Shown here: positions 1 through 61,134 of the stretch, piece by piece
Layout of the letters: every line of letters begins with the position of its first letter
Position numbering within the stretch: position 1 is the stretch's first letter
DNA from: Syncephalis fuscata S228
Taxonomy: Eukaryota > Fungi > Zoopagomycota
Assembly (NCBI GenBank): GCA_025786725.1
Contig: JAHLTZ010000010.1
Location: 248,001 to 312,000, forward strand
DNA: 64,000 nucleotides
Reading direction: 5' to 3'
Notes under the pieces: generated by a model
Databases searched by the model: none
The model's input: the letters and a program-made list of their open reading frames with translations, nothing else
What the model was told of the DNA's origin: nothing
Program-made: the position numbers and the translations under genes

Positions 1-129
1 CTGCATTAATTATACTATTTACTGATTATACTAATTATTTAATGCTAATAGGCCGTAAGTAGCACTGTATATTGATGTCTTATATGTTAATTATATGACA
101 TATAATATCTATTTGTAAATACAGCATAA
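1..129 (+). CDS. 3' end of a paralogous micro-exon gene: last 3-nt exon GCC (52-54), last intron (55-124), terminal exon with stop (125-129)
   Basis: ...CTAATAG|GCC|GTAAGT...ACAG|CATAA has the same architecture as the array at 19310-28665. In phase 1 it reads Ngc-cca-taa. The sequence downstream is homologous to that downstream of 28676. Confidence 0.7.
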
Positions 130-450
130 TCAATGGTTGCAAGACATTAGCATTAATAGTGCAATCAAATCACTATTCCAATACACTTTAGGTATATATT
201 CGGTGAAAAGCAAGACCATTTGACAACTACGCCGTCCTGTCTATCCATATATCAAGTTTTGGCCAATGCTCCGGTTTATCCAGTTTTTAATTAATGGAAT
301 CATTATTTTATCAACAAGCTTGCATTTAGCTGTTTTTATTCAACTGTGCAGGCATATAGTAATAGACTTGTGGTTTCATCTTAACTGTATACAATCAAAT
401 TGCTATATCAATAACCATGTTTTATTTGCATCCAATAATGGCAATTATTG
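130..450. repeat. Diverged duplicate of the region downstream of the micro-exon gene (28677-~28960)
   Basis: Colinear shared blocks: caagacatt; aaagcaagaccatttg vs aaagcaagatcatttg; ggtttatccagtttttaattaatgg vs ggtttattaaacttttaatcaatgg; tttattcaact; tagtaata. Confidence 0.75.
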
Positions 451-3267: not shown

Positions 3268-6186
3268 TTAGTAAGCGCCGGTGTAACCATAGCTGGTGCT
3301 AGGATAGGAGTTGTAACCGCCGTTAGCTGGTGCAGATACCGGAGCTGGCGCATTTGGGTAGGCGTTATGCGAAGCTGGAGCTGGAGTGTCTGGGTAGGCA
3401 TTGTGAGAAGCTGGAGTGGTTGAAGCAGCTGGAGCTGGAGTCACTGGAGTGTATGAAGAGTGAGGGGCTGAAGTGACTGGAGCTGGAGTATCTGGGTAGG
3501 CGTTATACGAAGCTGGAGTGGTTGAGGTAGCTGGTGCTGGAGTTACTGGAGTGTATGAAGAATGAGGGGTTGAAGTGGCTGATGCTGGAGTAGTTGAAGT
3601 GGCTGGTGCTGGAGTCGCTGGAGTGTAAGAAGCTTGAGGGGCTGAAGTGGCGTGGGTCTCATTGTGGAAAGGAATGTGACCGCTGCACTTGGAGCCGGAG
3701 CCAGTACCGGTGCAGGTAGATGGAGCTGGAGTGGATGGAGTGGTAGTTTTACCGCAGCTAGTACCGGTGCAGGTAGATGGAGTTGGGACAACTGGGGTGG
3801 ATGGAGTAGTTGGGACATATCCGCCATAGGTGTCGTTACCAGCTGGAGTGGATGGAGTGGTAGTCTTACCGCAGCTAGTACCGGTGCAGGTAGATGGAGC
3901 TGAAGCAGATGGGGTGGATGGAGTAGTTGGTACATATCCGCCATAGGTGTCGTGACCAGCTGGAGCTGGAGTTGAGACGACTGGAGCTGGAGTGTCAGGG
4001 TAGGCGTTATGAGGAGCTGGAGCAGATGGGGTAGTTGGTACATATCCGCCATAGGTGTCGTGACCAGCTGGAGCTGGAGTTGGGACGACTGGAGCTGGAG
4101 TGTCAGGGTAGACGTTATGAGGAGCTGGGCTAACTGGAGTGGATGGAGTAGTTGGGACATATCCGCCATAGGTGTCGCTGCCAGATGGGACTGGGGCTGA
4201 AGTGGATGGCGTGGTGTAAGTCTCATGACCGGATGGGACCTGTGGCTTAGCTGGAACATAACCAAATGGAGCTGGTACACAAGTGCAGATCTGGTGGGTT
4301 GATGGAATATAGATAGGAGCTGGAGCAGATGGAACGACATAAGTGTTGTTATCAGATGAGACTGGAGCTGGAGCAGATGGGACATATCCGCCATAGGTGT
4401 CGTTACCAGCTGGAGCTGAGACAACTGGAGTGGATGGGATGGTTGGTACATATTCGCCATAAGTATCGTGACCAGCTGGAGTTGGAGCTGGGACTATTGG
4501 GGTAGATGGAGTAGTTGGGACATATCCGCCATAGGTGTCGCTGCCAGATGGAGCTGGAGCTGAAACTACTGGAGCTGGAGCAGATGGGACATATCCACCA
4601 TAGGTGTCGTTACCAGATGGAGTTGGAACGGTAGTTTTACCGCAGCTAGTACCGGTGCAGGTAGATGGAGCTGGAGCAGATGGGACATTACCGCCATAAG
4701 TGCTGTTGTCGTGATCACCTGAAGCTGGAGTAGCTGGTGCGGTCTTGTTGCATGGAGCCTTTGGAGTTGGAATGTCATCAGTGTCATTGCCAGCTGGAGT
4801 TGAAGCTGGAACAGATGGAACTGGAGTGGTAGTCTTACCGCAGCTAGTACCGGTGCAGGTAGATGGAGCTGGAGCAGATGGGACATTACCGCCATAAGTG
4901 TCGTTACCAGATGGAGTTGGAACGGTAGTTTTACCGCAGCTAGTACCGGTGCAGGTAGATGGAGCTGGAGCAGATGGGACATTACCGCCATAAGTGCTGT
5001 TGTCGTGATCACCTGAAGCTGGAGTAGCTGGTGCGGTCTTGTTGCATGGAGCCTTTGGAGTTGGAATGTCATCAGTGTCATTGCCAGCTGGAGTTGAAGC
5101 TGGAACAGATGGAACTGGAGTGGTAGTCTTACCGCAGCTAGTACCGGTGCAGGTAGATGGAGCTGGAGCAGATGGGACATTACCGCCATAAGTGTCGTTA
5201 CCAGATGGAGTTGGAACGGTTGTTTTACCGCAGCTAGTACCGGTGCAGGTAGATGGAGCTGGAGCAGATGGGACATTACCGCCATAAGTGCTGTTGTCGT
5301 GATCACCTGAAGCTGGAGTAGCTGGTGCGGTCTTGTTGCATGGAGCCTTTGGAGTTGGAATGTCATCAGTGTCATTGCCGGCTGGAGTTGAAGCTGGAAC
5401 AGATGGAACTGGAGTGGTAGTCTTACCGCAGCTAGTACCGGTGCAGGTAGATGGAGCTGGAGCAGATGGGACATTACCGCCATAAGTGCTGTTGTCGTGA
5501 TCACCTGAAGCTGGAGTAGCTGGTGCGGTCTTGTTGCATGGGGCCTTTGGAGCTGGGGCATCATAAACATCATCGCCAGCTGGAGTTGGGACTGGAGCTG
5601 ATGGAGTCTCATTGTATTCACCACCTGGAGTTGGAGTATCATGGTACTCACCACCTGGAGCTGGTGCTGATGGAGTCTCATCGTATTCACCACCTGGAGT
5701 TGGAGTATCATGGTACTCACCACCTGGAGCTGGAGCTGGAGCTGATGGAGTATCATGGTATTCACCACCTGGAGCTGGAGCTGATGGAGTATCATGGTAT
5801 TCACCACCTGGAGCTGGAGCTGATGGAGTATCATGGTATTCACCACCTGGAGCTGGAGCTGATGGAGTATCATGGTATTCACCACCTGGAGTTGATGGAA
5901 TCGATGGAACATTTGATTCAGGTGCTCTGGCTCTGCACTTGAACACGCTGCAGCAAATAGGATGCTTGGTGTTGCACTTGACATTTTGGGTGGTCGTGTG
6001 CTTTGGTGTAGTAGTGCACGTACCATCAACACGCTTTAGATTACCGTTAACAGTGCCGCAGTGGTGGGCACCATTGTAGCAATGGAAAGTAGCGGTACCA
6101 CAGCCATCGCTGATGATTCCGGGGCTAGCAATGACGCTCTGGGCGGCAAGGATAAGAGCAGCAGACAAAATAAAAGCACCCTTCAT
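3268..6186 (-). CDS. Secreted Pro/Thr/Ser-rich repetitive (mucin/cell-wall/adhesin-like) protein, 972 aa
   Basis: Intronless ORF with signal peptide MKGAFILSAALILAAQSVIA and a Cys-rich N-terminal domain. Tandem GGEYHDTPSAPAP, STCTGTSCGKTT, DTYGGYVP and HNAYPDTPAP repeats follow. Confidence 0.88.
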   Translation of the reverse strand: MKGAFILSAALILAAQSVIASPGIISDGCGTATFHCYNGAHHCGTVNGNLKRVDGTCTTTPKHTTTQNVKCNTKHPICCSVFKCRARAPESNVPSIPSTPGGEYHDTPSAPAPGGEYHDTPSAPAPGGEYHDTPSAPAPGGEYHDTPSAPAPAPGGEYHDTPTPGGEYDETPSAPAPGGEYHDTPTPGGEYNETPSAPVPTPAGDDVYDAPAPKAPCNKTAPATPASGDHDNSTYGGNVPSAPAPSTCTGTSCGKTTTPVPSVPASTPAGNDTDDIPTPKAPCNKTAPATPASGDHDNSTYGGNVPSAPAPSTCTGTSCGKTTVPTPSGNDTYGGNVPSAPAPSTCTGTSCGKTTTPVPSVPASTPAGNDTDDIPTPKAPCNKTAPATPASGDHDNSTYGGNVPSAPAPSTCTGTSCGKTTVPTPSGNDTYGGNVPSAPAPSTCTGTSCGKTTTPVPSVPASTPAGNDTDDIPTPKAPCNKTAPATPASGDHDNSTYGGNVPSAPAPSTCTGTSCGKTTVPTPSGNDTYGGYVPSAPAPVVSAPAPSGSDTYGGYVPTTPSTPIVPAPTPAGHDTYGEYVPTIPSTPVVSAPAGNDTYGGYVPSAPAPVSSDNNTYVVPSAPAPIYIPSTHQICTCVPAPFGYVPAKPQVPSGHETYTTPSTSAPVPSGSDTYGGYVPTTPSTPVSPAPHNVYPDTPAPVVPTPAPAGHDTYGGYVPTTPSAPAPHNAYPDTPAPVVSTPAPAGHDTYGGYVPTTPSTPSASAPSTCTGTSCGKTTTPSTPAGNDTYGGYVPTTPSTPVVPTPSTCTGTSCGKTTTPSTPAPSTCTGTGSGSKCSGHIPFHNETHATSAPQASYTPATPAPATSTTPASATSTPHSSYTPVTPAPATSTTPASYNAYPDTPAPVTSAPHSSYTPVTPAPAASTTPASHNAYPDTPAPASHNAYPNAPAPVSAPANGGYNSYPSTSYGYTGAY

Positions 6187-14077: not shown

Positions 14078-16463
14078 GATGATGATAAAAAGTAATAAAT
14101 GTTATGTGAGTATGCACACACGGGAGTACTGGTCAAAGAACTAGCACAGATGAATGAAGATAACGCGAACAAATGCGGTGGTTAGCAATACCGGATGAAG
14201 AAAGTAAAGAGATGAGAGTTGGGGGAAGGTCAAAGGCAAGAGTGATGGCGCTTTTAAAGCCATCAGTTTAATGACACCATGGGTCGGCAATAGAAACGAC
14301 GACGACGTAATGCCTTACACACACACATGCTTGGTATTTCTGTGTGTATTTCTGTGTGATGTGTTTGTGTGTGCAGTAATTGAGAGCTACTAAGTTAATC
14401 TAGAGAGATGCCACATGTTCTTCCATTCTAGATCATGCCACCTTGCCCACTCTTGTTATCACACACACACACACACACGGATATCACACGGCTAGCCATA
14501 TTATTTACCATATTATTTTTATCACTGATGAATGTTTGAGATTCAAGGACATCCTGAATCCATTATTCATGTGGTGATGAATCAATGTTAACACGTTGGA
14601 TTTCTTGGCAAAGAATAAACCAATTAGTAAAATATTTAACTAAATTATTTATTGTTGTCGTTTGTTATCGCTATTTATTCATTTATTCGCTATTATTGTT
14701 GTTTGTTACTACAAGTAGATGTATCTGGCCAAGATATAAATATTAATAGCCATCTTTTACTTTGTAAATCGCTGCTATTGCTATCATTTAATTTCCTTAT
14801 TTTTCGCATATACTCAGCCAATCAGCACTTGCTGTATCATTCATGGTAGTAATACTTATAGCAGCAATACTCATGGTAAACTACGACTTGTAAAGTAATA
14901 TACTCTATTCTTGGCAAATCGCTGATTTTTGGCAATATAATTAGTCATGGTTGTTATGATCAGCACTCGTAGTCTTATGACCTTTGATTAATTTTACTAT
15001 CACAATTAATTGCAAACTTCTTGGCAAAAATGCCCATTATATTTATTGTTAAAGTCAGCCAAAATGTTTTATATTTATTTATGTTTTCGTTATTAGAGTT
15101 TAACCACTTTTTAATTTGTTATTGTCAAACACGCCCGCATTGTTTATAATATGTTCTATAAATAAAACAACTGTTATTATACATGCATTGCATAGATGGT
15201 GTATAACCATTTGTTTTACTATTATGCATCGGTCCTATGCCCAATCTGCATGGTCGAAAAAGAAAAACCAGCGGACTGTTTCGAGTTGCCCCTTAATATA
15301 CCACTTTTGTAATCCCTTGCTAAAACCACTCATTAGCAGCATAGGACATTGTTATCATGATTGTTATACTATGGCTGTTGTCAATGGTTGATGGCGGGGG
15401 TACGTTTTATAAACAAGAATTGCAATTAAACCCAAGTGTAACGGAAACAATAAAATAACAAAACAATCAATGTTTTCTAATGGGTCCAGTAGCAAAGTAA
15501 CACTAAACAGTAATTAATAATTAAATTGCACATCTTATGTCTTTATCTGGATAGGTAAAGCGGAGTTTACACTTCTGCATGTGGTGTTTTAGCGAACGTT
15601 CTATTATATTCAGCGCTAAACTTGCCTTTCTCCTCCGCAACATCTTTTTCTTTTATCCGTTGATTTGTGTCGTATCTTATTCATTATACTCTACAGTCTG
15701 CTGGCCAGACTTTGCACTGCACAGCATTCTCCGTAAACTTCTTTTTTGATAGCTTCTTGGTGTTTCTTTTTAGTATTCTTTCGTTAGTTTGACAGGTGTT
15801 TTCAAACAGCTGCAACGCGGTCGTTTCACTTTTGCTTAGTCGTTAGCTTGATCTTTGTCGTCGAGACAGAAACAGTTTGCTGCTGGTAGTTTTTTATTAT
15901 CTTTTGCAATCTCCTACTGTGTTACTGTATCCTTATCCGTTTGTATTCTTACAAGATTGAACTGGTGGCTACTCGCCTGCTTCATACTAAGTCGAATAAC
16001 GAGCGAAGGAGTAGTTACAAAAAGTTCGCGTGTACTCCGTGTTTCGTACTATTTTCTCCGTGCACGGGTTTAGCCTACCTTTTAAACCACCCATTGAGTA
16101 ACAACAGCTCCTGACTCTTTAAAACAACAACAACAGCGATAACCGCGGCGGTAGTAGTAACATTAAACCGTCACAATCATAACGTTTTCTTCTTTATTCC
16201 TTCAACGGCCATAAATCATTCATTATCTATCCTTTCTTTCGCAACATCGCATTTTAAGTAACACCTTCACTTCACTGTCCTACTATTATACACTGGCTGG
16301 TTCAGCGTTTGATACATCCATTGCATTTCCTTACTTTAAAGCTGTGCTCTTTGATACAGTTCACCTTTTTCATTCTTTTCTACTTTTACCGTTCACTATC
16401 GCGCCATCTTTACGCCATCTTTTTTCTACTGCTTTAAATAAGATTTTATTTGTTTCTGTCATA

Positions 16464-17177
16464 ATGACTTTGGACAAAAACCATCGCCAATTGGTACAGC
16501 GGTCGGAGTCGCTAAATATTTCGGCAAAAGCCAATTTAACATTTATAATAACGCCACAAAATAAAATCCGCGCTAAGCGACCATTTCCGCTGATTGCACA
16601 AAAAACACCTGTTGAGCCACTGCCAAAGTGCTCTACAACAGGATCATCAGAGCACGCGGCTCCTTCAGCGTATCATCAGGAGGTATTATCCAAGGCAACT
16701 GATGCAGATGTCGAGGCCAATCTTGGTAAAAAAATGTCAGCAATGACTAGCTCGTTGGCCCAACTACCTGCGTTAGCACGCGCCCGAGAACTTATTCAAG
16801 CTGAGCAGCGAGGCAAGGTCAATATGGAGCTTGAGGCATCAAATAACGCGTTAAATGTCGAGATGGCATCTCAAGCATTAAAGCCAAATGGGCATCCTGC
16901 CCGTGTTATTCGTAAACGACGATCGCAATCGGTGTCGGCAGTAATGAATACGTTTACAAGCCAGCTAGACGCCGATAACATTGATGCACCACCACAAGCA
17001 CATGATCCTGAGAGTCTAGAGGCGGATGCAGCTTGCTTTGAGCGTGTTTTTTCTTCCTATGCAGAATGGGCTCATATGACCTTTGTCGCCCCGACGTCGG
17101 ATGTAGATCCTAACAGCGCTAAGGTGCCTAGAAAGGATTCAATTCTTGCTAGTTCTCGACAACGTTTACAAAGGCAA

Positions 17178-17210
<33 letters not shown>

Positions 17211-17762
17211 GTAATGTCAGCCTTGGGTGAGCCATCAGCAGATGTTTCGCCCATCCCGCTATATCGTCGACGCCGTCCTTCTTTATCTGCTCCCTCGCCT
17301 ATTGCTATCGATCAACTACTACAAGCACCTATGGCCCAGATGTGCGCTCAATCACCAGCAAGTTCGGACCAGCGATTGAAGCCATCTTATCCACTAAGAA
17401 CGGCATTTTCTCCGCGCTCACCTTCGTCTCGTGTGCGTTCCTCATCAGTGGCACACCCCACAATCCATTTCTGTTTGTTACGTATTGTACTTTCAGCGCG
17501 TGATTATATTACTATCCGAGTACCAATTGATATCTCACTCAGCAACCTCACCACACTAGTTATCAACAAATGTTTACGCTGCGGTCGGCGTCGAGATGAT
17601 CTTAGCCATCGATTGTTCATTTGGGAACGATCGGACCCAGATCTTACTTTGGGCGTGGTTAATGACTCGATGCTTCGAGAAGTACTTTTGCCAAAGCCAT
17701 CCACATTAGCACATGATAAGTATGCATGTATTGAGAATCCGATAATACTTTATTGGACGTAA
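16464..17762 (+). CDS. Hypothetical protein with poly-Gln tract and a possible C-terminal PB1/ubiquitin-like fold
   Basis: Long intronless GC-richer ORF with first ATG at 16464. The domain call is only a visual resemblance. Confidence 0.7.
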
Positions 17763-19215: not shown

Positions 19216-22200
19216 ATGAGGTTTTTTATTGCCGTCGTCTGCACTCTCGTTGTGGCTTTTGTGGCCGGTATAATCATGGTGGATGCTAGGCCAGATTCAG
19301 TCCGCATTAGTATGTTACAATTAGTATAAATATGAAATATCTCTACGCTTAACTAATGGTAATATTAGCTGGTAAGTCATGCTTATAAATTGTTGCTTCA
19401 ATGTTTACCCTTGGCCGTCATTTACCTAATAAAATGGTAAACACATTAGGCGGTGGGTTTTAGGAGTACACAGCCATTTGTTTGCTAATTAAACGTTAAT
19501 TAATAATTTAAATGGACAAACGTAAACTATTAGCTAAGAGTAAGTTTATTATAAGCTAGTAGCTCAAATGCCATGTTTCTAATAGCAATATGTTGAATTT
19601 ACACTGATAGGGCGTAGGTTGTATTTATGCTAAATAGCAATTTAATTAAAAATCGGTTTATTCATCAATTAAAATTAATAGCCCGTAAGTAATATTGCAT
19701 ATTATTCGACTATAAGCTAATTACATGGTATTTATTGTATTTATCAACAACCTGACAGCATGTAAGTAGCATTGTATACAATTAACTATTTGCTAACTAT
19801 ATGTTCATTGTGTGTGCATGTCAACAACTTAATATTAATAGGCGGTAGGTGATACTTTATCTTAATTGATTATGCATTAATCAATTACTATTTACTATGT
19901 GTATTAATCACATGTATTAATAGATCGTAGGTGATACTGTATATTAATCAACTGTGCATTGATTATATGCTATATATATATTGTGTGCATTGGTAAATTT
20001 ATATTAATAGTTTGTAAGTGGTATATATTTATATCAATTGGCTATGCACTAATTACATTCTATATACTGTGGTGCCAACATTTCAATATTAATAGGGTGT
20101 AAGTAATATTTTATATCAATTGCTTATACACTAATTGCATGCTATTTATTCTGTGCATCAATAACTTGAAATCAACAGGCTGTAAGTAACACTGAATAAC
20201 AACCAATTATACACCAACTATATGCTATGCATTATGCGGATTAAACATTTTTTATAATAGCTCGTAAGCAATATGGGATATCAATTGGCTATACACTAAT
20301 CATATTTCATGCAATATTTAAACTAACAATTCAATACTAATAGCTGGTAAGTGGCGTTGTACATTATTTTATTTTATTTTGAAGAGCTTGTGGGCCCCCG
20401 CTGCGCATAATTAAAGAATTTGTGCTGCTTCTCAGTGTCATGCTGTTATCGCGTTAATTATAATAAAGCTTTTAAAATATTAAACAATGTAGCATTGTTG
20501 ATACCGAGTGGACCGCCACGTTTTTGCATGGAGCCGGGTCCTATAGACTCCACGCGGGGGCCACCATCTTTAGGTGGCGTTCGACGTCGAACGCCATTTT
20601 ATTGATGTGGTCCCAGGTATAAATTTGCCTCAGGCCTCTCTGGCCTTCAGCGTTTGTTGCCGGACCTTCTTGTGGTTCTGGTTGACCTGCTATTTGTGTG
20701 TCGGTACGTACTGTTTTCCATCTTCCTATTGCTTCGTCCACTTGCTTGCATCTTGTCTTCCATATCTTCTTCCATACGAAGTCCAATGCCGTCTTTGTTG
20801 CTGTTTTTATTAGTTCTCTTCTTTCTTCTTCGCGTACCCCCTCTCTTTTCATACTGTATAGTGTTTGTGGGCTCACCAATCCTAATAGAAATCCGGTGTT
20901 GCTGATTGGCTGATCTGGGACAATAGATTCAGCCACCTCCCCCACATTTAACAGTCTCATTGGCGGGTCTTTTCTCGATCTTCTTTCATTTATCCACTCC
21001 ACCTTTCTTCTTGTCATGTCTTTAATTTTATCTCTTGCTTCTTTTTCCCTATCTAGTCCGTTTCCTTCACACTTCACTATATGTCGCCACGTCTCTACTT
21101 CTCCACTACTACATCTGCAGCACATATTAGTTCTATACCTCTCCTTACACCATTTATTTTGCCTTTCTAGAGTTGGCAGTATACCGGCTGCCATTTTTAG
21201 CGCAAACTCTCTTCTTTTCATCTCTATTTGATACTCTTCCTTACTCGTGTCTTTTTCCGGTCTCACCCCCTCTCTTATAGTTAGCTCCACTTTTGTACTG
21301 GTAAGTAGTGTTTGTGCTAACTCCGGGTGTTGTCTTCCTATTAGTTCTTTTAATGCTCTTTCTTGCCTTACCTTGCTTTGTCGTTTAACTGCACTACGTG
21401 GCTCCAGTAGTGTGTTTAATTTTGACATGAGCATGTTGTGCTGATGTACTGGAGCTGGTGACGTGTTCAGCGTCCATCTTGGTACTGCTATTATTGTAGT
21501 AGCTGCCGCCTTTTTCGCTTCCTTGTCCGCCAGCTCGTTCCCTCTTGTACCTACATGTGCGCGTGTCCACTGCAACTCTGTCTTACCACTTCTCTGTCTT
21601 GTCGTTGCTGCTATCCTTTCCCATATCTTGTACGTTGGTGTGGCTCTTCTTTTGCTGTCTAGCCATGGCTCTGGCTTCAGCACGTACTGTCGCCACCACT
21701 CCTTGCACGTCATTGAGTCGGTTATCAGCTTTAAGTCACGGTCCGGTGGTGCGCAGCATAGCGCATGCGCTATTGCCATCGCCTCCACCATGTCTGAGTG
21801 GCAATGTGGACCGACATACTTTCCTGCTGTAATTGCCAGTGGCCGTGTACCCGTACTCGCTATTGCTATTGCTGCGTATCCACCTTTGCTATTCTTACCT
21901 GTTGGATCTATCACCGATCCGTCTGTCCAAATGTTTACTTCGCCACTGACGTGGCTTAGTGCCTCTGTCCAGTCGTACTCGTTTCCTTCTGCATCTACAC
22001 TCCTCTCTCTTAAATTTTCCTCTGTGAAGTCTATAGGCTTTCCTCGCCTTTCCCTTATCCCCTTTGCTATCCGCACTACTTCCATAGCTTCCCTTGCGCA
22101 TACCTGCCATTCCTTTTCCAGATCTTTGTACCATTTTGGTGACCCCGCCCTTGGTGCCTTCCTATATGTGATTTGGGTGTATGTCTTTAATTTTGGCGTG

Positions 22201-25200
22201 CCGTCTGCTGCTATTTGCATTACATCTTTCAGTCTGGTCAACTTAAAGTGTTTGACGGCTTTTCGAATATCTCTGTATGTTGTTGGTGTCACAACATCTT
22301 GTATCAATACTTCTTCTACTTCGGTCGGCAGTTGTTGTTCTCTGCCGCATACCACGCTGATTTCTCGCTCGTGTAGTCGTTGAGCTATGTGCATCGCGTA
22401 TATCCGTCTTGTTTCCCTTCTTTCCACGTACTTGTTGTATGGCGATCTAGTGCTGTATGTTGTTGTCCTTACTGCTTCTTCCTGCGCTCTGGCCGTCTCC
22501 CCTAGCACTCCTGGACTATCCAGTCTACGCAGTAGATCTCCGATCTGGCTTGCGTCTATCGCGTCGCGTGTTCTGGCTACATTCATACCATCCGTTGACC
22601 ATATTAGCGTGTTTGGTGCTGACTTCGCCATATGTGCTTTTCGTTTAAGTATTTTTAGCCATTTTCGATCTAGTGTCGTACACTGTGTTTCTGACATAGT
22701 ACTAGCTGCTGTTTTGTGTACCACAGCCGGCACTATTACTGCATTGATAATGTAAGCTGCTGTATTACTGTCTATTGCTTTCGGTGCAATAGTTTACATG
22801 TGTTTTCTACTGCTTTTTCTATTACATCAAACGCTGTTTGTTGTATCCATCTAGCGACAGCCAGCAGCCTAGTATTCTAAATGGTACATGTGGAGGCTGT
22901 ACTATTCTAACTAGGCCCACTTCTCCCTCAGCCAACCGAATTGGTTGTAGATCCGCGTTTACTGCTTTGCCAGATGATGTTTTGGCTGTGTGTATCGTCT
23001 TTCCACAGTGCACTTCTATGTCGTGTAGTTCAAAAAATGAGCGACAGATATTTGCTAGTTGTTGGAGGTTCGCTCTGTCTTCCGCCAGTAGTGTCAGGTC
23101 GTCTGCGAAGGCACCGTGGGCGATCTTTACCGGTGTGTTGTTATTTCCTATACTTCTCATTACATACCCATGTTCTGAATCTTTCAGTTTTGTTAGTAGC
23201 GGGTCGTAGAACGTCAGCCATAATAATGGTGAGTTTACTTCTCCCTGGTCCAGTCCGCATTCCGGATGATGTACCTCTGTTTGCCCGTGTGCTGTTAGTA
23301 CTGTTGCTGTTCGTTGTTCAAATATATTTGCTAGTAAGCCTATATATTGTTCTGGTATTTTTAGTCGTCTTAACGAACACTCTAAGCTATGCCATGATAC
23401 TGAGTCATATGCTCGTTTCACATCTAGCAACAGTACTTCCAGTCCACGTTCATGGCAAATGGAATCATCCATGACCGCTCTCAGTACCTGGACAAAGTCC
23501 GTCGTTTTATTGCCTCTTGTAAAACCGAAGTTACCCCCCTGTAACACTCCATTTCTTTCCATTACCTCTTGCAGCCGTCTCGTCACTATTATTGAGTATA
23601 GCTTGCGCATTGTCTCCAATAATGTGATTGGCCGTAGCTGCGCCATGTCTCCACACCAATTTGCCGTTTTTGGTATTGGTATTATTACCCCATGCTTCCA
23701 GGCTGTTGGTACATCCCCTTTTTGCAAACACGCTGTAATAATTCCCGCCATCACCTGCTGCAATTCCCCACATGCTTTCTGTAACATTTCATTTACCACT
23801 CCTGATGCCCCTGGTGCTTTGTTTTTTGGCAGACTCTTTAGCACTGCTGTCATCTCTTCTATCCCCACTGGTTCCATGAGACCGTTATAGATGGCAGGGT
23901 CGATGCTCTCTATTGGTCTATAGCTACCTGACCATGTTGGGTGGTTTAGCGGGCTAGTTCCACGTCTCGCACCCATCCACTGAGTGAAGTAGTCTCGAGT
24001 GAGTCGGCGTACCTCTTCTGGCCGGTCCTCGATAGTCGAGTCATTGGTCTGTACCACTGTTATTTGCTGTAGTGGCTTATTCTTCTCCAAAACTCTTTTC
24101 AACACCTCTTTTAAGTCAGTGTGAAACAGTAGGTTTCTTTTCATCGTCGCGCCGCGTATTTTTTCGTTTAGTTCTTTTTTCTTCTCTCTGTTGTACTGAT
24201 TGCTTAGTCTCGTCTTCAGACCTTTGACCTCGTCTACCGAGGCATGCTCTTCTAGTTGTCCCGCCAGCTCCACCAACTGTGTAACCGTAGATACAGCGAA
24301 CTGTTGCGGTTACTACGAGTCACAATACAATAATGTATATAAAATAAAAATGAATATTGAAAGTGAACTAATGTCTTTATTTGTGGTCATAATCATACGC
24401 GTATTTATATTGTTCTATTGGATATATGGAATATCTAAGTAGAACAATAAAAGAAAATAAAATAAAAATAAAAGAAAATAAAAGATAAAGATAAAACAAT
24501 ACGCGGTGGCGGAGTGTTAACTTCATCGTGGACCATGTGTGATGATCGGTGTGTTTAAACACCGATCATAATGTCTAAAAATGGTAATAATAAATGAGAG
24601 GGAGAATTTTTGTTACAAACTGCGTAACCGACGGATGACGTCTTGCTAGTCGCTTTATTCGCTCACATCTTTGTCTTGCCGATAAATCTTCTTTTTGTAT
24701 TTTAGCCAGACTTTTTGTCGTCTGCAGAACCGGATGTAGACTCAGCTCATCACTGGGCCTATTCCTTCTTATCACGATATGTGGCAGCTTGTCATCAGCG
24801 CACAGCACCAGATGACTGACGATTGCTCCCCATAGTCGATCTAAGTATGGAATACTGTTGTGTTCAAGCTGGCCGTCTTCTTTTGTCTGCTCCACCGCAT
24901 CTTTAATTGTTCTATTCCAACCTATAGCTGTTGCTGAGGTGTAATTCATCCAATCCACTTCTGTAGCCTTTCGTCTGTTTAATATTTTGCGCGGCAGTTG
25001 TTGGCATAGCCTGTCACCTGCCCGCTGGAATATTATTGACGTGGTCAGCTCCAACACTATCGGTTGATGTGTGCTATATATTCCTTGGTTTATTTGCTGT
25101 CCCGTCGTTCCGCTCCCCTCTTCGTCTTCTATTCCTACCCCTGATACCATATCCGCTAGCGTATCTGTTGTCAGGAATAAGTCTAGCCTGGCGCGCGCTA

Positions 25201-28200
25201 CTCCGTTCTCTCGTTGCATAGTGTTTGTGTACTTGTATATGTCTGGGTACTGTCTTCTCCAGACATCGACCATACTTCTTGTTGCCATCAGATACTCCAG
25301 CATACTTGACTCTGCTCTTGTATCTGTGTACCCTTGTCGGTCCAGCCATGGCTGTGGGACGGCGTTGAAGTCGCCTCCTATCACTACTTCTGCTCTTTTC
25401 TGGCGCGCTTGATCCACCCATTTCTTCAACTCGGTCAGCATGCGATTGGCTGCACTCGGATTGCTTCTTCCCTTGTTTGTTGGGTACAGAAGCCCGACTA
25501 CCAGCAGTCCCCTTTCCCGGAATGCCAGTCGTATGCCAATCATTCTGTTGTTTACTGTGACTACTTCTTGTATGTGCTTCTCCCACTCAACCTTTATCAG
25601 TATTGCTACTCCATAAAAGTTTGCGTGGCCTCTTTGTGTTGACCTTTCTGGCGCACCTGCCGTCTTTAGGATATATCTACCTTTGATTCCAGTTTTGTTA
25701 GCTATTTCTTTTTCTATACTTTCCGTCCAACGCGTTTCAGTTAGTATTATAAAATCTAAGTCCAGCTTATTCAACGCTGTCCATAGTAGGTCCATCTTGC
25801 TGCCTGTTGTTGCCCCTGTGACGTTCCAGTGTATAAATCTCATTTTCTCCGGTCCTGGCCTCCGTTCTCTATAAAAGTTAGAACTTGTACCCACAAAGAG
25901 CTGGCTAGTGTCCCTGTAGTCGTTATTTGATCTATTATTGGGTCTATTATTATTAGTACTATTTAATGTATTGATATTATTTAATGTATTAATATTATTA
26001 TTCATTTTTTATATTTATTATTTTTTGTCTTATTATTATTTTTAAATGTTTTAAATGTTTTGTTATTCTTATCTTATTATTTTTAAATATATTAATATTT
26101 TTTGTCTTATTATTTAATCTATTCTTTTTTTTTAATGTATTATTATTAATTATCTTATTTTTTGATATACTATTTTTAGTTAATTTCTTTTTGTTATTTT
26201 TCTTATTATTATTCATTGTATTATTATTATTTTTTATCATATTATTCTTGTTATTTATCTTTTTCTTTTCTTATTCTTATTCTTTATGCTATTATTAGTT
26301 CTGGCCGGGCATTTCTGCCTGACTCCACTTACTCTGCCCTGCCCCCATTGCTTGACTTGTTGGACTGTTGACTGCAAACGTGTTTATACTCATTTGCGTT
26401 GTCTTTTTTGGCTTTAGTTGTCCCAGCTGCTTTAGTCGTTCAGCTGGTGTGTGCGTCGCATCGTCCATTTCCATGTCGTTTTCATTGCTGTAGTCTTCTT
26501 CTGTTTGGTGTTGACTTGTCATCTCTACGTCTTCTCCGTCTTCTACCTCTACCTCTCCCTCTTCTCTCTCTCCCATTGCTGGCTCATCTTCCAGCGCCAT
26601 TCCTTCTTCCATGTCACACACCATTGTCTCTACTGCTCCTTCTTCCGGCTTTTTGGCCGCTGCCGCTACTATGGCTAGCTGCTTCGCTGTCTTCTCTAGC
26701 TCTTCCGTTTGGCGTCGCGTTTTCACACCCCCGCTAGCTAGATTTATTCCTGCTACTGGTCTTGTCTTTCTTTGTCTTCCCTTCTTTGCTGGTGGTGGTA
26801 ACTCTTGTTCTTCTTGTTGTTCTTGTTCTTCTTCTACTACTACTACTGCTACTGCTACCTCTCCTTCTTCTCTTTCTTCTTCCTCCACCATTTCATTTTC
26901 TTCGTCTTCGTTCACATCTGTTGCTTCTGGCGTTTGCTGTTCTTCTTGTTGTTTTTCGTGTTCAGCTGTCACTGTATTGTTGGCTGGTGCTGTGTTTCTC
27001 TGCTGCCAGCTTCCCGATGTACAGTCAACTGCGATATGTCCCACCATGTGGCACCTAAAGCACGCGTCTCTTCTTCCGATCTTCAGCATCATCGCCCCCA
27101 CTCTTATTCTTGTCGGTATTTTCTTCTCGTCTGTTTCGACTTTACACACTACTATTGGAGACTCTAATACGCAGTCATAGAATCTCTTTTCTAGTCTGTG
27201 TATCGCCCAGACTTTGCTGTTTGGCCCCAATTCTTCTCTTAATTTTTGTGCCACGTGCTCCAACTCTGTTGCCGCGTCCACCCCTATCACTTTCAGTGGT
27301 ATTGGTGCTGGCCCTTCATAGCTTCTTACTTTGATGTGCTCTTCTCCAATATAAAAGCCTTCTCTCACCATCAAGTTTACTTGTTGTTTAGAGAATAAGC
27401 TAAACACATATTCCCCTGCTGCATTATCAATACTGTACTTGATTTTTTTTCCTTCTTTTAATTTCTTAACAATCGCCTGCGCGACTTCTGCTATTCTGTT
27501 AACATTTGTCATCTGTACCCCGATACAATGCTTCAATACTCTTTCCTTTCTTAATTTCTCCGCTTCGCTTTCCATCGTTTTCACAATGTTGTTTGTTACT
27601 TTTTCTGAGTAAAGCTGACGCTGCTGGGTTGTCATTTTTCTTGATGTCTTTTTCTTCTTTTTTCCTTTGAAAAAATATAAATGGAAAGAGTCTTTTAAGT
27701 AATGTGGCGTTGTACATTAGTTGACTATTTACTAACTATATTTTTATTATGCGTACCAACAACTTGCTATATTAGATGGTAATTAGTACTGTATATTAAC
27801 TGATTATACATTAATCATATTCTACCTACTACGTGTATTAAACGATCGATATTAATAGAGGGTAGATAATATTTTATAACAATTGGCTATGCACTGACTA
27901 CATGTTATGCGTTATATCCGCTAAATGACTTTTAGAACTAGATCGTAAGTGGCATTATATATCAATTAAATAGTTATCAATTACATATTATGTGATGCGT
28001 GTATGAATATTTTAATATTAATAGTTGGTAAGTAAAATTGTATTTCATTCAGTTATGCACTAATTACATATTATGTGCCGTGTGTATAAACGAATAAATA
28101 TTAATAGAACGTAAGTGATATTATGCCAATTGGCTATGCGCTAATTACACACTATGTATTGTATGTATCAATAAATCAATGTTAATAGACTGTAAGTACC

Positions 28201-28676
28201 ATTATAAAATAATTTATTATTTGCTAATTATATATTATGTGTTGTGCGTATCAATAACTTAATATTAATAGGCAGTAAGTACTACCACATATTAATTAGC
28301 TATGTGTTAATTATATGCTATGTATTATGTATATTAAAATTTAATGTTATTAGAATGTAAATGATATTGTACAACAGTTAACAATTCACTAAATACGTGC
28401 TTATTATATGTATCAACAACTCAATGTCAATAGGCAGTAAGTGGTAGTGTATATAAACTGGCTATGCACCGATTAAATACTATTTACAATGTGTATTAAT
28501 AGTCTAATATTGATAGAACGTAAGTGATACTGTATATCAAATATTTACGGACCAATTGCATGCTATATATTATGCTTATAAAATTTGATATTAATAGCTG
28601 GTAAGCGATATTTTATATTGTTAATTTATACATTAATTCATACCATGTATTATATGTATCTATAGAAGGACATTAA
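19216..28676 (+). CDS. 26-exon micro-exon gene encoding a 59-aa secreted Cys-containing peptide precursor
   Basis: Exon 1 19216-19309. Micro-exons: ctg 19369-71, gcg 19450-52, ctaaga 19534-39, ggc 19611-13, ccc 19682-84, cat 19759-61, gcg 19842-44, atc 19924-26, ttt 20011-13, ggt 20096-98, gct 20179-81, ctc 20261-63, ctg 20344-46, [LINE in intron 14], atg 27776-78, agg 27859-61, atc 27942-44, ttg 28025-27, aac 28108-10, act 28189-91, gca 28272-74, aat 28354-56, gca 28434-36, aac 28517-19, ctg 28598-600. Last exon 28666-28676. All introns are GT..AG. The 180-nt CDS translates to MRFFIAVVCTLVVAFVAGIIMVDARPDSVRITGAKRPPCDLWCSPDEDLEHCKCKPEGH*. Confidence 0.85.
19310..20366 (+). repeat. Tandem array of ~80-bp intron + 3-nt exon units (left half)
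   Basis: Periodic AATAG-NNN-GTAAGT junctions. From ~19685 on, units share a body like gtaagt-gatattgtatatcaattggctatgcactaattacatgctat...aatattaatag. Confidence 0.92.
20541..22821 (-). CDS. LINE ORF2 C-terminal part: RNase H and C-terminal Cys/His finger
   Basis: RNase H motifs IWTDGS, EAMAI, ITDS and WTRAHVGTRGNELADKEAK; CCRC..ETWRHIVKC. It joins the RT part if one A is added in each of two A-runs near 22835 and 22795. Confidence 0.88.
22822..24279 (-). CDS. LINE ORF2 reverse transcriptase domain
   Basis: KAPGASG, IPIPK, RPITLL, LLDVKRAYDSVSW, GLDQGEVNSPLLW and FADDL motifs. Confidence 0.93.
   Translation of the reverse strand, partial: QLVELAGQLEEHASVDEVKGLKTRLSNQYNREKKKELNEKIRGATMKRNLLFHTDLKEVLKRVLEKNKPLQQITVVQTNDSTIEDRPEEVRRLTRDYFTQWMGARRGTSPLNHPTWSGSYRPIESIDPAIYNGLMEPVGIEEMTAVLKSLPKNKAPGASGVVNEMLQKACGELQQVMAGIITACLQKGDVPTAWKHGVIIPIPKTANWCGDMAQLRPITLLETMRKLYSIIVTRRLQEVMERNGVLQGGNFGFTRGNKTTDFVQVLRAVMDDSICHERGLEVLLLDVKRAYDSVSWHSLECSLRRLKIPEQYIGLLANIFEQRTATVLTAHGQTEVHHPECGLDQGEVNSPLLWLTFYDPLLTKLKDSEHGYVMRSIGNNNTPVKIAHGAFADDLTLLAEDRANLQQLANICRSFFELHDIEVHCGKTIHTAKTSSGKAVNADLQPIRLAEGEVGLVRIVQPPHVPFRILGCWLSLDGYNKQRLM
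24280..24617. mobile_element. Solo LTR (338 bp) nested in LINE ORF2
   Basis: Ends are TGTAAC...GTTACA with a 5-bp TSD AACTG at 24275-24279 and 24618-24622. Removing it restores the in-frame RHPSVTQ-LVELAGQLEE. Confidence 0.9.
24618..26005 (-). CDS. LINE ORF2 N-terminal apurinic-like endonuclease domain
   Basis: HWNVTG, LTETR, GVAILIK, GGDFNA, RLDLFL and STHQPI motifs of EEP/APE endonucleases. Confidence 0.92.
26295..27635 (-). CDS. LINE ORF1 (gag-like, CCHC zinc knuckle)
   Basis: CFRCHMVGHIAVDC knuckle and an acidic low-complexity tail. Lies 5' of ORF2 inside the TSDs. Confidence 0.9.
   Translation of the reverse strand: MTTQQRQLYSEKVTNNIVKTMESEAEKLRKERVLKHCIGVQMTNVNRIAEVAQAIVKKLKEGKKIKYSIDNAAGEYVFSLFSKQQVNLMVREGFYIGEEHIKVRSYEGPAPIPLKVIGVDAATELEHVAQKLREELGPNSKVWAIHRLEKRFYDCVLESPIVVCKVETDEKKIPTRIRVGAMMLKIGRRDACFRCHMVGHIAVDCTSGSWQQRNTAPANNTVTAEHEKQQEEQQTPEATDVNEDEENEMVEEEEREEGEVAVAVVVVEEEQEQQEEQELPPPAKKGRQRKTRPVAGINLASGGVKTRRQTEELEKTAKQLAIVAAAAKKPEEGAVETMVCDMEEGMALEDEPAMGEREEGEVEVEDGEDVEMTSQHQTEEDYSNENDMEMDDATHTPAERLKQLGQLKPKKTTQMSINTFAVNSPTSQAMGAGQSKWSQAEMPGQN
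27704..28665 (+). repeat. Tandem array of ~80-bp intron + 3-nt exon units (right half)
   Basis: Same unit as 19310-20366, resuming exactly after the TSD. Confidence 0.92.
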
Positions 28677-29359
28677 CCGGTACATCCAAGACATTGGAAC
28701 TAGCAGTTCAATCTATTTTAAATAAATATTCGATGCAAAGCAAGATCATTTGGCAAACGTCGTTCAGTTTATTTATATACCAAGTTCCAGCCAATATTTT
28801 GGTTTATTAAACTTTTAATCAATGGCACCATTATATCGCTAAAGTCTGGGTCCAGCTGGGTTTATTCAACTATTCAGAATTTTAGTAATAAATACATGGT
28901 CCCATTTGATTTTATTTGATCAAGCTATCAGCTTCTACCTGTTTTGTAGCAGTCTCTATTTGAGCAATCACAATCGTATTACGGATGGCAAGAGAACACG
29001 TATTATTGGCAGAGTGTGATTGAATCTGGGCGCTGGAAGTAACATAGGAAACGTAGATGGTGTGCCGTGAAGATGGCAAATAATATTTATATATTGAAGC
29101 AATAAATCAATGTAAAATAGCTCATTTTTGTAAGTATTATCAGTAAAATAAACTAAATCAGCATCAATTATCATCAATTTACATGTTTTTAAAACAAATA
29201 ATTTACAGTTAATTGCATATCATTGCACGGCTGTTATTAAATCAGTAATGTATTGCTAAATGGGGATCAGAAATTACAATCGATCACATTTACATGAGGC
29301 GATTATTAAGGTGATTGGAAAACACTAGTACCAATATAGATGCTATTTCGGTGGTAAAT

Positions 29360-59905: not shown

Positions 59906-61134
59906 ATTAGTGTGTTAGCGGCCGGCTACCAAGCAATATAACAATCAATGTTATATTGATGACTTTAAATTTAGTTTACTAACTTACTAACCTGTATTGA
60001 TAATTACAGCTTTATATCATAAATAAAAATCACCAAATTGTTTTAGTGTGCTAGCGGCCGGCTACACAACATTGCAACATACTAACTTTATATGTATTGT
60101 TTTAGATTTAGGTACTTGGACACTAACACTAACACTTGTTGATTATTATAGATTGTAGACAGCCGGGCACCGGCATAAACACTGGCGCCAACACCAACAT
60201 CAGCACCGACACCGACACCAGTACCAACACCAACGCCAACATCAGCACCGACACCGACACCGACACCAACATCAGCACCAACATCAACACCAACACCAAC
60301 AGCAACACCAACAACAACAACAACATCAGCACCAACAACAACATCAACACCAACAACAACACCAACAGCAACATCAGCACCAACACCAACATCAACATCA
60401 GCACCAACATCAACATCAACATCAACACCAACAACAACATCAGCACCAACAGCAACATCAGCACCAACACCAACAGCAACATCAACACCAACACCAACAT
60501 CAACATCAGCACCAACAACAACATCAGCACCAACACCAACAGCAACAGCAATATCAACACCAACAGCAACATCAGCACCAACACCAACATCAACATCAAC
60601 ATCAGCACCAACAACAACATCAACACCAACACCAACATCAGCACCAACACCAACATCAACATCAGTACTAACACCAACATCAACATCGACACTAAACACC
60701 AGCGCCGACGCTAACATCAATACCGACATCACCATCAACAACAACATATACAAGTAATTTGTCATCAAGTTCAAGCATCAAGCATAAAGCATAGTTGTTA
60801 TCACGTACTTTAAGCACACATGATCTTAAGTACCATATCCTTTTATTTCTTATTCAACTCCCATTGTTTTTATTTCATATATTTGCACTAACAATATAAC
60901 AATGATTTTAGATTCTAGACTGCCGCCTACTAACATACTAACATCATTAATATTATTTTAGATTTTAGATAACCGGCCATGGACACCTAGCGTAAGTATT
61001 ATTATTATACATAGCCGGCCGCTAGCACACTAAAACCAAATATGCAATATCAATTCAGGACAATTGTCTACTAACGTACTAACATTGTATTTATTGTTTT
61101 AGAATTGTAGGTAGCCGGCCGCTAACACACTAAT
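59906..61134. repeat. Two nested perfect 25-bp inverted-repeat pairs enclosing a ~570-bp (NCA)n low-complexity tract
   Basis: Outer pair 59906-59930 / 61110-61134; inner pair 60040-60064 / 61012-61036; tract ~60180-60750. Confidence 0.9.

Follow-up and report, generated by a model that had tools for sequence, protein, structure and literature searches.

A putative secreted-peptide gene of Syncephalis fuscata with a series of three-base exons set between homologous introns

How does a gene come to deliver its coding sequence three bases at a time? The question is raised by a gene of the fungus Syncephalis fuscata S228 (Zoopagomycota), which can be read directly, with its translation, at 19216-28676 on the forward strand of a 64,000-nucleotide stretch of contig JAHLTZ010000010.1 (positions 248,001 to 312,000; this whole stretch is called the window below). 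A signal-peptide exon is followed by 24 micro-exons and a short last exon. Twenty-three of the internal exons are 3 nucleotides (nt) long and one (19534-19539) is 6 nt long. All 25 introns have GT-AG ends and measure 59-84 nt, with the exception of intron 14, which has a length of 7429 nt. The best reading of the locus, which we hold to be probable though well short of certain, is that this gene model is correct and that most of its introns originated by tandem duplication. The parts of the gene are as follows.

19216..19309, forward strand: exon 1, with the ATG, a signal-peptide-like N-terminus and the start of the pro-region; 31 codons and one base, ending at a GTATGT donor in phase 1
19310..19681, forward strand: introns 1-5 (59-81 nt), not detectably related to the repeat family, in the part that encodes the pro-region up to Lys-Arg
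19369-71, 19450-52, 19534-39 (6 nt) and 19611-13, forward strand: micro-exons among introns 1-5
19682, 19759, 19842, 19924, 20011, 20096, 20179, 20261 and 20344, forward strand: micro-exons 6-14 (3 nt each)
Within 19682..20346, forward strand: homologous introns 6-13 (74-84 nt)
20347..27775, forward strand: intron 14, a 76-nt member of the intron family split by a retrotransposon
27776, 27859, 27942, 28025, 28108, 28189, 28272, 28354, 28434, 28517 and 28598, forward strand: micro-exons 15-25 (3 nt each)
Within 27776..28600, forward strand: homologous introns 15-24 (77-80 nt)
28601..28665, forward strand: intron 25 (65 nt), a weak family member and the positional counterpart of the last intron of a paralog
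28666..28960, forward strand: last exon, with two bases that finish a codon, two codons and a TAA ending at 28676; the remainder is 3' untranslated region, conserved with the paralog

A scan of all 64 kilobases (kb) with the junction pattern AG-NNN-GTRRRY recovers the complete periodic series and no second such series, and Tandem Repeats Finder detects the array only in part, with a period of 83. The original prediction was made for positions 19685-28665, limits that fall exactly on the opening base of intron 6 and the closing base of intron 25. It proposed that introns 6-25 are tandem duplicates of one another, to be tested by comparison with shuffled introns, and that the peptide has grown one residue at a time.

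The test favors a common origin. When the intron cores are compared after trimming 6 nt from the 5' end and 3 nt from the 3' end, introns 6-25 have a mean pairwise identity of 63% and a maximum of 79% (introns 7 and 20), against 52.6% (standard deviation 0.032, maximum 0.636) for composition-matched shuffles. Each intron was also scored against a profile of the others (leave-one-out). Introns 6-24 obtain 30-48 bits each, whereas eight intron-like control segments of the window (GT..CTRAY..YAG, AT-rich, of equal length) obtain 3 bits at most. The alignment of the array introns is in register and nearly gapless. Introns 6-24 are homologous. The family is narrower than had been proposed: intron 25, with 14 bits, is a weak member, and introns 1-5, which had been taken for more diverged copies, lie at the background (no more than 3.8 bits, about 52-57% identity). 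The boundary between unrelated and related introns coincides exactly with a Lys-Arg site, where the predicted pro-region ends and the mature peptide starts. When the intron profile is run over the whole window, its sole match outside the array is at 55-108, in the tail of the paralog.

The triplets between these introns present a different picture. When each triplet is aligned together with the intron after it, pair-identity in the three exon columns is 0.24-0.26, the chance level, whereas the intron columns have a mean of 0.66 and all lie above the exon columns. The exons had been said to vary freely, and the contrast is stronger than that statement implied. The GC content is 53% in the triplets and 26% in the introns, and no two adjacent triplets of the array are identical. 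The best conserved intron columns are those of the donor, of a CTAAT branch-like motif about 40-45 nt before the acceptor, and of the AATAG acceptor. The array introns look like normal introns of this genome: the 85-nt intron of an actin gene in the same window has the same design, with a GTAAGT donor and CTAAC about 39 nt before the AG.

What would such a gene encode? The N-terminus of exon 1 has a single Arg followed by about 15 hydrophobic residues, which by eye suggests a signal peptide. The 31 amino acids of exon 1 alone have no homolog among 1.84 billion representative sequences. GTATGT at the end of exon 1 is its sole consensus donor, and it is in phase 1; therefore every intron is in phase 1, and each triplet is split between successive codons, two bases going to the first and one to the second. 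This frame is free of stops until 9 nt into the last exon, where it ends with the TAA at 28676. Its product consists of the signal peptide, a short pro-region, Lys-Arg and a 23-residue peptide with four cysteines, spaced C-x3-C-x8-C-x-C, and with the tail Lys-Pro-Glu-Gly-His-stop. For triplets of this composition, four cysteines in 27 codons would arise with a probability of about 0.009. Codon usage trained on six coding stretches of the window places phase 1 ahead of phase 0 by 9.5 bits and of phase 2 by about 20 bits. The predicted product has what is expected of a fungal Kex2-type cysteine peptide precursor, namely a signal peptide, a dibasic site ahead of the mature peptide, and cysteines in even number.

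The following course of events would account for these observations. The locus would be a genuine spliceosomal gene, belonging to a Syncephalis-like fungus (Zoopagales), and its product the precursor of a small secreted peptide. The signal peptide would come from exon 1, which ends in phase 1, and the 24 micro-exons would deliver the remaining coding sequence three bases at a time. The pro-region would end in Lys-Arg, a Kex2-type processing site, from which the 23-residue peptide would be released. A unit of 83 nt, comprising a 3-nt exon and an intron of about 80 nt, would have been amplified in tandem to yield the part encoding the mature peptide, so that every unit duplication would add one codon and one intron. 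After the amplification the triplets would have diverged fully, while about two thirds of the intron sequence would have been retained. The anatomy, the homology of introns 6-24, the contrast between exon and intron columns and the frame are observed; from them we infer splicing, secretion, processing by Kex2 and the mechanism of duplication. The difference in retention could reflect selection for different residues or constraint on the introns. The latter appears preferable: the introns are probably constrained because a 3-nt exon carries no splicing signals of its own.

Tandem duplication is the best explanation, as the only simple mechanism by which homologous introns would come to share one orientation and one phase at a spacing of exactly 3 nt. 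The proposal that the unit of intron and triplet was amplified in this way is upheld on grounds of parsimony by 19 in-register homologous introns at exactly this spacing. Mass intron gain can likewise be retained: most introns of the gene would have been gained in bulk, because the 19 introns would descend by tandem duplication. It had also been stated that each event inserts or deletes exactly one amino acid. A unit duplication does add exactly one residue, but the triplet itself spans two codons, as the introns are in phase 1.

The history of the array can be approached through the paralog, which has the same orientation, lies some 19 kb upstream and brings the family to at least two members in this region.

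1..420, forward strand: tail of the paralog, cut by the window edge, with part of the penultimate intron (1-51), a micro-exon (52-54) and the last intron (55-124)
127-129, forward strand: immediate phase-1 stop in the last exon of the paralog, followed by a homologous 3' untranslated region

More than 350 nt of the 3' regions of the two genes can be aligned, with a mean column identity of 79% and with insertions or deletions of 17, 2, 2 and 1 nt. The region is most likely untranslated, and longer phase-0 frames are disfavored, because these lengths are not multiples of three. In phase 1 both paralogs stop no more than 11 nt past the last acceptor.

Among introns 6-24, similarity does not drop with distance along the array (Spearman 0.07), and adjacent introns are no more similar than random pairs (permutation p = 0.48). 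The longest identical run common to any two introns is 16 nt. The maximum-likelihood tree of the introns is star-like, close to a polytomy. Its sole strongly supported clade (95/93) joins intron 25 to the last intron of the paralog, and a weaker one contains introns 7, 20, 14 and 17. A higher-order repeat was also considered: the mean at an offset of 13 units is slightly raised (0.69, n=6), which is unconvincing given the many offsets tested. The array is old and predates the split of the paralogs, with no sign of recent duplication, conversion or homogenisation. Its age follows from the star-like tree, the lack of a distance trend and the shortness of the identical runs. Homogenisation since the split is contradicted by the pairing of intron 25 with its positional counterpart in the other gene.

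These data bear on the most serious alternative, according to which the array is still active, with unequal crossover or gene conversion continuing to add, delete and shuffle single codons within and between paralogs. The intron family is indeed common to both genes. The partial penultimate intron of the paralog belongs to it and is closer to introns 21 and 8 than to its counterpart 24, a weak signal over 48 nt, and the non-adjacent pairs 7/20 and 8/15 reach 78-79% identity. Some comparable arrays found in soil metagenomes, described below, have introns that are 87-95% identical and would be good substrates for recombination. The introns of S. fuscata, however, are only about 63% identical, their exact runs are short, neighboring units resemble each other no more than random pairs do, adjacent triplets never coincide, and the last intron has kept its own lineage since the split. 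Continuing diversification is accordingly unlikely at this locus, although it retains more credit than any of the other rivals. The original prediction had gone further in this direction than the data allow. The introns here are a poor substrate for the codon shuffling that had been ascribed to them. The tree that had been suggested, including introns of the paralog, places the last intron with the last intron of the paralog and not with its neighbors. Nor does the array reveal growth by single residues: the tree is a star, the best pairs are not adjacent, and the size of the steps is illegible.

Intron 14 and the surroundings of the gene require a separate account, as they bear on whether the gene is alive.

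20367..27703, reverse strand: non-LTR (lacking long terminal repeats) retrotransposon of about 7.3 kb, with ORF1 (open reading frame, ORF), endonuclease, reverse transcriptase, RNase H and an A-rich 3' tail

The element is flanked by perfect 16-bp target-site duplications at 20351-20366 and 27704-27719. With the insert and one duplication removed, intron 14 becomes a 76-nt intron that scores 35 bits in the leave-one-out comparison. The element is full-length, but its apurinic-type endonuclease, its reverse transcriptase and its RNase H lie in three different frames, and this copy is therefore defective. The relatives of its reverse transcriptase are distant, the best being 54% identical. Between the parts for the endonuclease and for the reverse transcriptase lies a non-coding, AT-rich stretch of about 270 nt (24309-24578), perhaps inserted secondarily.

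The order of an actin gene, a gene for a poly-Gln protein, a small gene and the gene for ribosomal protein S6e, compared over 12587-33203 of the window, is kept in two other Syncephalis species, S. plumigaleata and S. pseudoplumigaleata. Where the window has the micro-exon gene and the retroelement, these species have about 550 bp, and no array was found in the orthologous interval of either species or of a third related contig. The micro-exon gene is lineage-specific at this site, because the orthologous interval of the two species is without the array.

Could the array then be a non-coding minisatellite of 83 bp or a dead gene, its GT...AG ends a coincidence and nothing in it spliced or translated? 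The sequence is a tandem repeat, its splicing and expression are deduced from the letters, a retrotransposon sits inside it, and two relatives do without it at the orthologous site. Some of the metagenome arrays that match the junction pattern are, moreover, plain satellites with an invariant triplet. A neutral repeat, however, is expected to diverge evenly and without regard to frame. Here variation at the chance level and a doubled GC content are confined to a 3-nt slot (identity 0.25; intron columns, 0.66), and this slot sits between the two best conserved motifs. The spacing keeps the reading frame throughout, the array follows a signal-peptide-like exon with an ATG, the frame is closed by a stop in both paralogs, and one frame is favored by codon usage and cysteine content. 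We consider this explanation improbable, slightly more so than continuing diversification.

A further possibility is that a mobile, introner-like intron inserted repeatedly into a continuous coding sequence, so that the peptide was interrupted and not grown. This would account simply for similar introns between dissimilar triplets, but it demands that the intron inserted independently 19 times, always with one orientation and one phase and at intervals of exactly 3 nt. The flanking exon bases have no proto-splice-site consensus, there are no target duplications, and the 64 kb contain no solitary copy elsewhere. Such an origin is quite improbable. The weakest proposal, a non-coding host gene in which each tandem intron releases a small RNA and the exons are irrelevant, as in snoRNA hosts, could draw on intron blocks conserved beyond the splice signals and on the tandemly repeated snoRNA introns known in mammals, yet it is very hard to believe in view of a search of Rfam that gave no family at E ≤1, barring one sub-threshold match inside the retroelement, of zero consensus pairs in RNAalifold, of an intron consensus without C/D box motifs, and of exons that keep the frame and are compositionally distinct.

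Several points nevertheless weigh against a functional gene grown by tandem duplication. The signals that support exons 2-5 are weaker than those of the array; the exon at 19450, for example, has the weak donor GTGGGT. Openness over 25 codons is not significant on its own, and phase 0 is open too. Splicing is deduced from the sequence, and the 7.3-kb insertion in intron 14 may have disabled the gene. As for its origin, the star-like tree cannot show stepwise growth, and the triplets have no residual similarity, which leaves their co-duplication with the introns a matter of parsimony and not of observation. Finally, the absence of the gene from the orthologous site in two Syncephalis species means that there is no outgroup.

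Arrays of 3-bp micro-exons have a precedent in fungi. They are described for the nank (NACHT-ANK) family of the truffle Tuber melanosporum by Iotti et al. (2012, Fungal Biol 116:261), as reported in PMC4986451, PMC3689799 and PMC10197012, each of which cites that work for the splicing of 3-bp exons in fungi. As far as these citing papers convey, the likeness lies in tens of consecutive 3-bp exons, short canonical introns, a fungal gene and exon skipping that keeps the frame. Searches of the literature on single-codon exons and tandem introns returned nothing relevant except this precedent, which was reached through work on micro-exons of NLR genes. On the strength of these reports, the novelty claimed for the S. 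fuscata array has to be reduced.

The window gene shares with the truffle genes the consecutive 3-bp exons and, in introns 6-24, short GT-AG introns that are alike; the mutual similarity of the Tuber introns is itself an assumption taken from the NLR-linked arrays of metagenomes. It does not share their location in a NACHT-ANK gene, since here a signal-peptide exon precedes the micro-exons, and a Pfam search over the large ORFs of the window found no NACHT and no ANK domain. A further mark of the truffle type is alternative splicing of its micro-exons, reportedly documented by cDNA. The truffle genes encode NLR-like receptors of Ascomycota; the window gene belongs to Zoopagomycota and is predicted to encode the precursor of a small secreted cysteine peptide. 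Its introns are old and diverged (63%), and they are in phase 1, whereas the readable NLR-linked metagenome arrays are in phase 0. The layout is thus of a little-known kind, reported before solely in truffle genes resembling immune receptors, and occurs here in a new phylum, gene type and intron phase.

Three other systems invite comparison. Micro-exon genes (MEGs) of Schistosoma, reportedly described by DeMarco and coworkers in 2010, are secreted-protein genes with a signal-peptide exon and with most coding sequence in symmetric micro-exons of a length divisible by three. The window gene has the same arrangement, if the signal peptide recognized by eye is accepted. MEGs have been proposed to generate protein variation; they belong to animals and are not known to be related in sequence to the window gene. 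Their exons range from 6 to 36 nt or more, and their introns, which are long, are not known to be tandem copies of each other. Introners of fungi and algae resemble the array in providing many homologous introns per genome and bulk intron gain, but they are scattered over unrelated genes by transposition-like insertion, while the copies described here belong to one gene family and follow each other head to tail with 3 nt between them. The near-identical dispersed copies typical of introners were seen neither in the 64 kb outside the array and the paralog nor in 123 other loci, none of which matches the intron profile. The WD40, ANK and TPR repeats of fungal NLRs also combine a conserved scaffold with a few freely varying positions, and their growth and shrinkage by recombination of repeat units has been proposed. 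Those repeats are coding throughout, whereas in the window array the scaffold is intronic and one codon per unit is predicted to be expressed.

When contigs of soil metagenomes were scanned for the periodic junction pattern, more than 120 matched. In about 25 of the arrays the introns are mutually 65-95% identical, the triplets vary and there is no stop in frame 0; chance alone would place about 33 stops in the 472 triplets that the 29 variable arrays contain in total. The intron sequence of the window array recurs in none of these arrays. Several adjoin or directly follow NACHT/ANK ORFs of Pezizomycotina type, and those linked to NLRs are in phase 0 where they can be read. The young arrays often show the same triplet in successive units. 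Such runs are the direct signature of single-unit duplication, and it has been lost from the old array of the window.

Arrays of 10-35 units occur at L056, L098, L121, L122, L071, L035, L008, L070, L084, L103, L119 and other loci. In those of the L056 type, introns of about 65-75 nt are 75-95% identical, and the triplet flanked by AG and GTAAGT changes from unit to unit, never to a frame-0 stop; L121 and L122 have one common intron family. These arrays probably correspond to the nank phenomenon of Tuber, and the layout of codon-sized exons seems to be more widespread than the literature indicates. Four others (L082, L109, L095 and L059, on contigs WNGA.. and WNFZ..) have introns of 70-107 nt with a GC content of 15-17%, variable triplets and no frame-0 stops, and presumably come from a different eukaryote. 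The reverse pattern is seen at L007, L080, L026, L054 and L025, with up to 45 units of a constant triplet GGA and intron-like spacers that are about 67% identical. These could be satellites with a conserved core, or a run of a single residue encoded by micro-exons.

Some other features of the window may be recorded. The ORF at 16344-17762, next to the micro-exon gene, is 58%, 55% and 50% identical to proteins of S. pseudoplumigaleata, a JGI sample and S. plumigaleata, respectively, and it follows actin in the conserved gene order. On the reverse strand, 3268-6186 is an open frame of 972 codons made of nested tandem repeats, some of whose units measure 294 nt and are 99% identical. A Pfam search with it found no credible domain, a FerB match being below threshold, and its product is probably a repetitive protein of the wall or mucin-like type. 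At 60188-60746 there are about 30 copies of an 18-nt unit, or equally 23 copies of a 24-nt unit, which in some strand and frame would code for a segment rich in Pro and Thr.

With exons of 3 nt the spliceosome is at the lower limit of its capacity. If 24 such micro-exons are spliced in a row, the information that pairs the splice sites must sit in the introns, and the locus would be a natural test case for splicing by intron definition. It would also be a clear case of bulk intron gain by tandem duplication, with at least 19 introns in one gene and one amino acid per step. Its occurrence in a secreted peptide gene of a mycoparasitic, early-diverging fungus widens a phenomenon known from one gene family of truffles, and standard gene finders will miss such genes.

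A broader view, which we offer tentatively and regard as possible though not the likelier outcome, is that arrays of one codon and one intron are a general fungal device, reinvented several times, to build or vary short peptide segments. If so, they would have originated independently in Zoopagomycota, in phase 1 and for secreted cysteine peptides, and in Ascomycota, in phase 0 and for NLR-like receptors. The intron would be the conserved, selected scaffold and the codon the free variable. Exon skipping, being neutral to the frame, might then produce a family of peptides from one gene.

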